From Octopus sinensis (Eukaryota): DNA of 64,000 bases. Positions 40,918 through 40,993 of the stretch are shown here, piece after piece (the stretch's first letter is position 1; every line of letters starts with the position of its first letter). The DNA is taken from positions 22,692,001-22,756,000 of the forward strand of contig NC_043016.1 of NCBI RefSeq assembly GCF_006345805.1. The letters run 5' to 3'. A model generated the notes under the pieces. That model was not told the origin of the DNA, searched no databases, and was given only the letters and a program-made list of their open reading frames with translations. The position numbers were made by a program, and so were the translations under genes.

Positions 40918-40993
40918 TTAAATGACTTGTGTCGGTGGGGCTGCTTTCTTCTTATTGGAGACAGGAGGGTTTGGTGAGACAAGCTGGCTGAAA
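40918..40993 (-). CDS. MAPK8IP3/SPAG9: Candidate alternative last coding exon of JIP3/4: (F)FSQLVSPNPPVSNKKKAAPPTQVI*
   Basis: Acceptor aaactaattttgtggttatttttag| has a CTAAT branch-like motif. Phase-2 entry gives IWNF-FSQL. Stop TAA at 40918-20, no consensus donor, and a U-rich UTR-like tract follows. Confidence 0.65.

Follow-up and report, generated by a model that had tools for sequence, protein, structure and literature searches.

The 64-kb stretch of octopus DNA analyzed here (hereafter the window) appears from its sequence to be the middle of a gene of the JIP3/4 family (MAPK8IP3/SPAG9/Syd/UNC-16) on the minus strand, since both its upstream exons and its linker exons are matched by JIP3/4 proteins. 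JIP3/4 adaptors link lysosomes, autophagosomes, and dense-core vesicles to dynein and kinesin-1, and variants in MAPK8IP3 lead to neurodevelopmental disease. The exons for the RH1 domain and for the WD40 propeller lie beyond the window, those of the propeller past position 1. Using tblastn, we found that a deposited, N-terminally partial protein of 549 amino acids (UniParc UPI0006955FFF, P0121 in our searches) covers five exons in the window, at 53759-53700, 51872-51816, 50589-50437, and 50208-50014, with its last 24 residues at 40992-40921. Identity was 100% throughout, except for residues 411-461 at 50437..50589 (98%). Pfam places JIP_LZII (PF16471, E = 8e-32) at residues 373-443 of this protein, which fall on the first three of these exons, namely the exon in which LZII starts (53700..53759, GMGKELENLILENTELLATK, residues 374-393), a second LZII exon (51816..51872, NALNVVKDDLIAKVDELT, residues 393-411), and the exon for the coiled coil running from LZII to RH2 (50437..50589). 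The next exon (50015..50205) encodes RH2; named JIP3/4 proteins from Mytilus, Lingula, and vertebrates match it at 79-92% identity in their RH2 regions. Its 3' end (...TCT ATT TGG AAT TT|GTAAGT; protein ...KKKSSIWNF) is in phase 2, with the donor at 50014-50009, and the W-x-F of the FFxxL helix discussed below comes from this exon.

The long isoform could be followed with a JIP4-like protein of Mytilus trossulus (XP_063415030.1), which matched the same upstream exons in tblastn and then 7588-7412, 4407-4267, 1558-1463, and 78-1. The linker exons of the long isoform in the window are 7589-7410, 4407-4267, 1558-1463, and 78-1, all on the minus strand. The first of them is the constitutive exon that follows RH2 in the long, WD40-containing isoform (FSNLFNTSNKPSKKPLPVATVRYNAPTTHVQPVG...QDEG; E = 4.7e-33 with a profile of constitutive exons), the second is matched by residues 649-694 of protein P0122, and the third begins IWCAAGVNLTGG. 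Within the constitutive exon (7500-7520, minus strand), a YNAPTT(H/Q)VQPVGDPNKK block is strongly conserved from brachiopod to octopus and reads NAPTSHV in vertebrates; we found no function for this block in the literature. The introns contain other features. A 185-amino-acid open frame at 58765-59319 (minus strand) resembles the C-terminus of a non-LTR retrotransposon ORF2 (…LLYGSETW…) and has no Pfam match, and a dispersed, probably SINE-like repeat whose frames read poly-His and then LTS.FHASMGWT recurs at 383-565, 6891-7100, 8073-8294, and 16767-16904 (minus strand). Microsatellites are abundant across the entire window, and long (CT)n/(CA)n tracts stand beside a run of N, an assembly gap, at ~4400-4500.

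An alternative last coding exon (40918..40993, minus strand) lies inside the 42-kb intron after the RH2 exon, with the constitutive exon a further 33.3 kb on. An earlier note on this DNA had proposed such an exon, claiming a good acceptor with a branch-like CTAAT, the phase needed to continue IWNF-F, and 24 codons followed by a stop and no consensus donor, and all of these features held up on analysis. The 3' splice site (40994..41015) consists of CTAAT at 41015-41011, a T-rich tract at 41010-40996, and AG at 40995-40994. The first base of the exon, at 40993, completes the split codon TT|T left by the RH2 exon, and 24 codons (FSQLVSPNPPVSNKKKAAPPTQVI) and a TAA stop (40920-40918) follow, such that the exon begins T TTC AGC CAG CTT ... 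and ends GTC ATT TAA. No GT with at least 7 of 9 matches to MAG|GTRAGT was present in the ~690 nt after the acceptor. We asked whether GTCATTTAA, a sequence conserved between octopus and Lingula, could hide a donor; however, its use would break the frame into the exon at 7589 and it is absent in Mytilus, so it is not a donor but simply the codons for V-I-stop. By analogy with an oyster transcript whose untranslated region is at least 825 nt long, 40274..40917 is the presumed 3' UTR. AATAAA occurs from 632 nt on, first at 40285-40280 and 40279-40274, although these signals are weak evidence for polyadenylation because the region is AT-rich.

The last 24 residues of UPI0006955FFF are 100% identical to the product of this exon. 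When we searched proteins with the RH2 exon plus the tail, two named proteins ended alike, CAG2203616.1 of Mytilus edulis (...IWNFFGQLVAPDPIPASNPNKKGKPKTQIV) and XP_013402292.1 of the brachiopod Lingula anatina (...VWGFFNHLVYGDPEPATAYEPTEKKSSVI). The genomic RH2 exon of Lingula shares the end phase and the GTAAGT donor of its octopus counterpart, and ~790 bp on stands cctttgcag|T TTT AAT CAC CTC GTT ... GTC ATT TAA; the Lingula constitutive exon (FGNLFSSSSNKPKK...NAPTTHVQPVG) is 3.6 kb beyond it, all within a gene for a JIP3/4 protein of 1368 amino acids. The Lingula RH2 exon and ~1.1 kb around it are present twice in tandem (L001:8859-9053 and 9989-10183), which may be an assembly artefact and may account for the splitting-off of the 86-amino-acid model. 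Further genomic contigs were obtained through small read-through ORFs of the RH2 exon and one metagenome scan. The same arrangement was found in bivalve loci L002-L007 (tail FGQLVAPDPVPVSNSQKKAKSKTQIV), in loci L008/L009 (FSNIVAPDPPPQPAKKKGQTEVI), and in locus L020 (FSNLVAPDPPPTPPRKKNTHDTQVI*), while L011/L012, L048, L049, L052, and L053 carry a Ser/Gly-rich variant tail ending ...KKK..QII* or TVI*. Thus, Lingula, Mytilus, oysters, and six further groups of invertebrate contigs all have an exon in the same intron and phase that encodes F-x-x-L/I-V/M ... KKK ... Q-[VI]-[VI]-stop, its position and phase being the same in at least 10 independent loci. The acceptor form AG|T TTY is likewise common to the homologous exons in Lingula, bivalves, and the other loci. 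Loci L008 (6064-7221) and L009 also contain, within this invertebrate JIP3/4 gene, a 45-bp minisatellite of ~24 copies whose unit derives from the 3' end of the LZII exon and its donor (VKDDLIAKVDELSG|GTGA).

A profile of the tail built without the octopus sequence was searched against the 4320 six-frame ORFs of the window. The ORF at 41058-40921, which contains the exon, ranked first of 4320, with E = 0.0023 when the profile held 5 taxa and 1.1e-4 when it held 12. The runner-up, at 43876-43760, is a C8A8 low-complexity tract rather than an exon. In the related loci L048, L049, and L052, the conserved stretch spans the interval from acceptor to stop codon, with flanks that cannot be aligned, and the gaps within the exon measure 12, 3, and 9 nt. 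Conservation confined to the exon, with gaps in multiples of 3, is what selection on a coding exon would produce. Taken together, these data make it very probable that the 76 bases form a genuine alternative last exon, common to molluscs and a brachiopod.

The exon was not found everywhere. No recognizable alternative exon was present in the complete 8.6-kb intron of L010, which is probably gastropod by its RH2 linker, and a search of L010 for a long tail of the land-snail type was also negative. Nor was the exon recognizable in loci that we take, from the JGI sample names, to be annelid (gutless oligochaetes) and termite. The alternative exon can therefore be lost. In addition, a search of a representative protein library with a profile of the whole 549-amino-acid protein returned long isoforms and fragments but no new tail-bearing proteins.

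Full-length short isoforms of this kind exist among deposited sequences. Two Magallana gigas proteins named 'JNK-interacting protein 3' (A0A8W8LCA6 and A0A8W8LGM9; 703 and 723 amino acids) contain LZII together with RH1 (Pfam PF09744) and end ...IWNFFSNLVAPVPPVPPPTTKPSPSRSQKHRTHIV, and three short-isoform ORFs came from Logan contigs of 2.2-3.1 kb. One Logan RNA contig from oyster (L013, SRR24489194, ORF 64-2175) aligned in at least nine separate blocks to the genomic contigs L014-L019. In this transcript, the RH2 exon (1877-2078) is joined directly to the alternative exon, and past the junction 922 nt are colinear with the genome, 825 nt of them after the stop, with the contig ending before any polyA. 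The junction and the unspliced 922-nt run show that the exon is both spliced in and terminal in an oyster. Land-snail protein models start their tails alike, with FSELV(AP), and then continue for ~190 more residues. Another ending was seen in a Mytilus-like Logan ORF of 651 amino acids (P0274), which stops right after the RH2 exon with …SSIWNFFMPS*, keeping the FF but not the xxL. Separately, three proteins of 565-680 amino acids encoded on Logan and ENA contigs (P0158, P0172, and P0190), whose genes appear to lack introns, have RH1, LZII, and a divergent RH2. They stop soon after an FFxxL-like motif (…VWGFFNSFLGREKDEN*, …VWNMFNSFLGLDKQDQ*), and their genes may be stand-alone short JIP3/4-like genes.

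For the octopus, protein searches covering lengths of 48-154 and 302-1050 amino acids returned neither a transcript-derived ORF with the tail nor any annotated protein with the tail besides UPI0006955FFF, which is N-terminally partial and could be a split gene prediction. The octopus Logan contigs that contain the RH2 read-through ORF are genomic and run out ~2 kb past the RH2 exon, short of the alternative exon. From the comparative evidence, we infer that the alternative exon is used in octopus RNA.

The boundary between the RH2 exon and the exons that can follow it falls inside a motif of established function. Human JIP3 is autoinhibited by a helix at residues 570-582 that contains FFxxL and binds RH1 as a mimic of the dynein light intermediate chain helix (Singh et al. 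2024, PMC7615804). A JIP3 fragment of residues 1-582, which lacks the WD40 region, stays inhibited, whereas a 1-560 fragment or an FF-to-AA mutant is active (Singh et al., Science 2024, PMC7615804). In both JIP3 and JIP4 the motif reads WQFFSRLF and follows RH2. In the window it reads WNF|FSQLV with the alternative exon, whose codons for (F)-F-S-Q-L (40981..40993) complete FFxxL together with 50017-50015, or WNF|FSNLF with the constitutive exon, the exon junction splitting FFxxL in either case. Because of this split, any exon joined to RH2 must supply F-x-x-L and a hydrophobic residue if the brake is to be kept, and F-x-x-[LI]-[VM] is kept in 13/13 alternative exons. In the oyster short isoform, AlphaFold predicts helices for RH1/LZI, LZII, and RH2, a short helix exactly at WNFFSNLV, and a disordered tail; the pLDDT of the WNFFSNLV helix is about 50, a low confidence that is expected for a monomer model. 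Two other readings of the tail were set aside. PDZ ligands fall into classes I-III according to the residue at position -2, and most tails have Q there, which fits none of the classes. The TMEM55B-binding motif is located near residue 890 in human JIP3/4 and hence is not part of the alternative exon but merely lost in the short form.

Given this arrangement, our preferred reading, which we hold to be probable, is that the intron after RH2 harbors an old alternative last exon that yields a short JIP3/4 protein lacking WD40 but retaining FFxxL. The alternative that deserves the most space is that the exon arose as a tandem duplicate of the constitutive exon, as the earlier note had suggested from the TTTCAGC start and the CTCCAATAAG that the two exons do share, in the same frame. 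The likeness in FSxL, SNK..KK, and P-T-Q/H-V would then be inherited. In line with a duplication, phase and the first four residues agree in every species, a basic cluster followed by T-Q/H-[VI] comes in the same order in both exons of octopus and Mytilus, and the alternative ORF comes 14th of 4320 with a constitutive-exon profile. However, this last match scores 3.4 bits (E = 18) and is driven by the FSxL start, and the constitutive exon does not stand out among the window ORFs with the alternative-exon profile, so that profile scores are non-significant in both directions. Local alignment of the two peptides against shuffles was non-significant in four species (octopus, p = 0.19; Mytilus, oyster, and Lingula, 0.13-0.75). 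At the DNA level, p was 0.07-0.13 when the alignment was compared with shuffles and 0.036 when random intron segments served as the control, the score coming from a single 10-mer. Since the exon is older than the mollusc-brachiopod split, that 10-base identity in octopus is not a relic of a duplication. What the two exons have in common in every species is an initial F-[SGN]-x-[LI] and a hydrophobic residue, and this start is needed anyway, because each exon must complete the RH1-binding FFxxL helix that straddles the junction. Apart from this shared motif, the two exons could not be shown to be more alike than expected by chance. The claim of a duplication was thus not upheld, and we regard this origin as possible but doubtful.

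Three other alternatives are less likely. It might be conserved elsewhere but silent or decaying in the octopus, with UPI0006955FFF an artefact of gene prediction in the 33-kb intron, a view to which the missing transcript-derived octopus ORF (within the lengths searched), the apparent loss of the exon in some lineages, and the partial N-terminus of that model would lend weight. We think this improbable, since the acceptor, phase, ORF, FFxxL-completing residues, KKK cluster, and TQVI end are all intact and the octopus ORF scores as well as the bivalve exons against the profile, whereas an unused stretch of 76 nt would not survive intact since the cephalopod-bivalve split. Still less probable is a poison cassette exon whose stop sends the mRNA to nonsense-mediated decay. 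Its in-frame stop and its position between two constitutive exons would suit that role, but there is no donor-like site in the ~690 nt scanned, the oyster RNA runs on unspliced for at least 825 nt past the stop, and conservation of the peptide across phyla extends to its carboxyl end, more than a mere carrier of a stop would be expected to show. A chance open frame behind a chance AG is the least credible reading. Although an exon of 24 codons is short and an AT-rich intron of 42 kb is long, the top rank and the E value of 1.1e-4 in the profile search, the recurrence at the same position and phase in independent loci, and the perfect match to the end of UPI0006955FFF all speak against it.

If an old, FFxxL-retaining alternative last exon is indeed what the intron contains, the choice of 3' end after the RH2 exon would produce either the long scaffold or a short adaptor. 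Splicing from 50015 to 40993 with polyadenylation downstream would give a short protein that keeps everything N-terminal, including LZII and RH2, and carries the 24-residue tail in place of the linker, the TMEM55B-binding motif, and the WD40 propeller. The sites in JIP3/4 that bind motors, KLC/ARF6, and Rab are N-terminal of the tail, and functions that depend on the WD40 half would be lost. The FSQLV of the tail would complete the FFxxL-hydrophobic helix, which in human JIP3 folds onto RH1 and blocks the dynein light intermediate chain. Extrapolating from human JIP3, the short form would keep autoinhibition, and a natural short form should act like JIP3 1-582, autoinhibitable and lacking WD40, and unlike the always-active 1-560. 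Prolines or glycines would end the helix, leaving a disordered tail in which a basic cluster and the carboxyl-terminal Q/T-[VI]-[VI] are conserved, which suggests a binding partner. A bolder version of this model, to which we give only a small chance, treats the tail as a regulatory module that dates back at least to the mollusc-brachiopod split. Its start would preserve the FFxxL-hydrophobic contact with RH1, the proline-cut helix might tune autoinhibition, and the basic cluster and Q/T-[VI]-[VI] end would recruit a partner of their own. Within this version, the LC8 dynein light chain could be one candidate partner because several tails contain K-x-T-Q-[VI]; the constitutive exon of molluscs also has P-T-T-Q-V. 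Were the tail such a module, the gene would switch between a lysosome-tethered scaffold, held by WD40 and the TMEM55B motif, and an untethered motor adaptor under its own regulation.

Short forms of this family have precedent in C. elegans, where six "N-terminal short forms" with RH1, LZ, and RH2 and without WD40 are annotated for unc-16 (Drozd, Quinn and co-workers 2024, PMC10888800). In unc-16 mutants that spare the short forms, PLM axon termination is near normal, and one short form partly rescues the null (PMC10888800). Like the octopus form, the UNC-16 short forms have RH1, LZ, and RH2 without WD40 and come from the same gene as the long form; the window itself has LZII and RH2, and the oyster orthologue has RH1. 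This likeness is one of domain content. The tail LVxPxP...KKK...Q[VI][VI] was found only in molluscs, a brachiopod, and other invertebrate contigs. Closer counterparts are the oyster isoforms and the fragment models of Lingula (XP_013402292.1) and Mytilus (CAG2203616.1), which have the orthologous exon with an FF-x-x-L-V start, a proline-rich stretch, a basic stretch, and a [VI][VI] end, although tail length in oyster, Lingula, Mytilus, and land-snail database entries ranges from 23 amino acids to about 190 (land snails). We found database entries only, and no published description, of the oyster, Lingula, and Mytilus short forms.

The octopus short form ends at a place equivalent to the end of human JIP3 1-582 and keeps FFxxL and a hydrophobic residue. 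The human constructs, however, are artificial truncations, and the octopus tail reads ...LVSPNPP where the human protein reads ...LFSSSS, a difference that may shorten or weaken the FFxxL helix. RILP, RILPL1, and RILPL2, which are said to have a helix analogous to that of JIP3 (Singh et al. 2024, PMC7615804), resemble the short JIP in being RH1 + RH2 adaptors without a propeller, but they are the products of separate genes and lack the JIP LZII, the KLC/ARF6-binding region, which the short JIP keeps according to Pfam. Since the exon belongs to a JIP3/4 gene and JIP_LZII is kept, the short form is RILP-like in architecture only and is not a member of the RILP/RILPL family. Predicted vertebrate forms, namely isoform X15 of Macaca fascicularis JIP4 (P0312, 613 amino acids) and a Polypterus protein (P0330, 568 amino acids), also extend from RH1 to RH2 without a propeller; unlike the octopus form with its dedicated exon, they stop right after the constitutive exon (…KAFDFLSEE*).

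The earlier note had further proposed that one gene could switch between a full JIP scaffold and a short RILP-like motor adaptor, and knew of no description of this in cephalopods. The switch itself gains from the conservation of the exon, its splicing and terminal position in oyster, and the deposited model identical to the octopus exon, while the comparison with RILP stands for architecture alone. The claim of novelty was overstated, given that functional UNC-16 short forms are published and that oyster short isoforms are already in UniProt; with the former in print, the idea of switching between a scaffold and a short RH1-RH2 adaptor is not new. We did not find the exon, its conservation between molluscs and a brachiopod, or its relation to FFxxL described in the literature, and searches on JIP3 with octopus, or on intronic polyadenylation of SPAG9/MAPK8IP3, returned nothing relevant.

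For cephalopod annotation, the analysis flags an isoform that is represented by one deposited, N-terminally partial model among the proteins searched. The requirement for FFxxL readily explains the conservation of an exon boundary within this motif. That a WD40-less isoform ending just past the autoinhibitory helix has been kept in at least two phyla suggests a selected product rather than a by-product, and an adaptor without the propeller but with its own brake fits the axon-termination function carried by the UNC-16 short forms.
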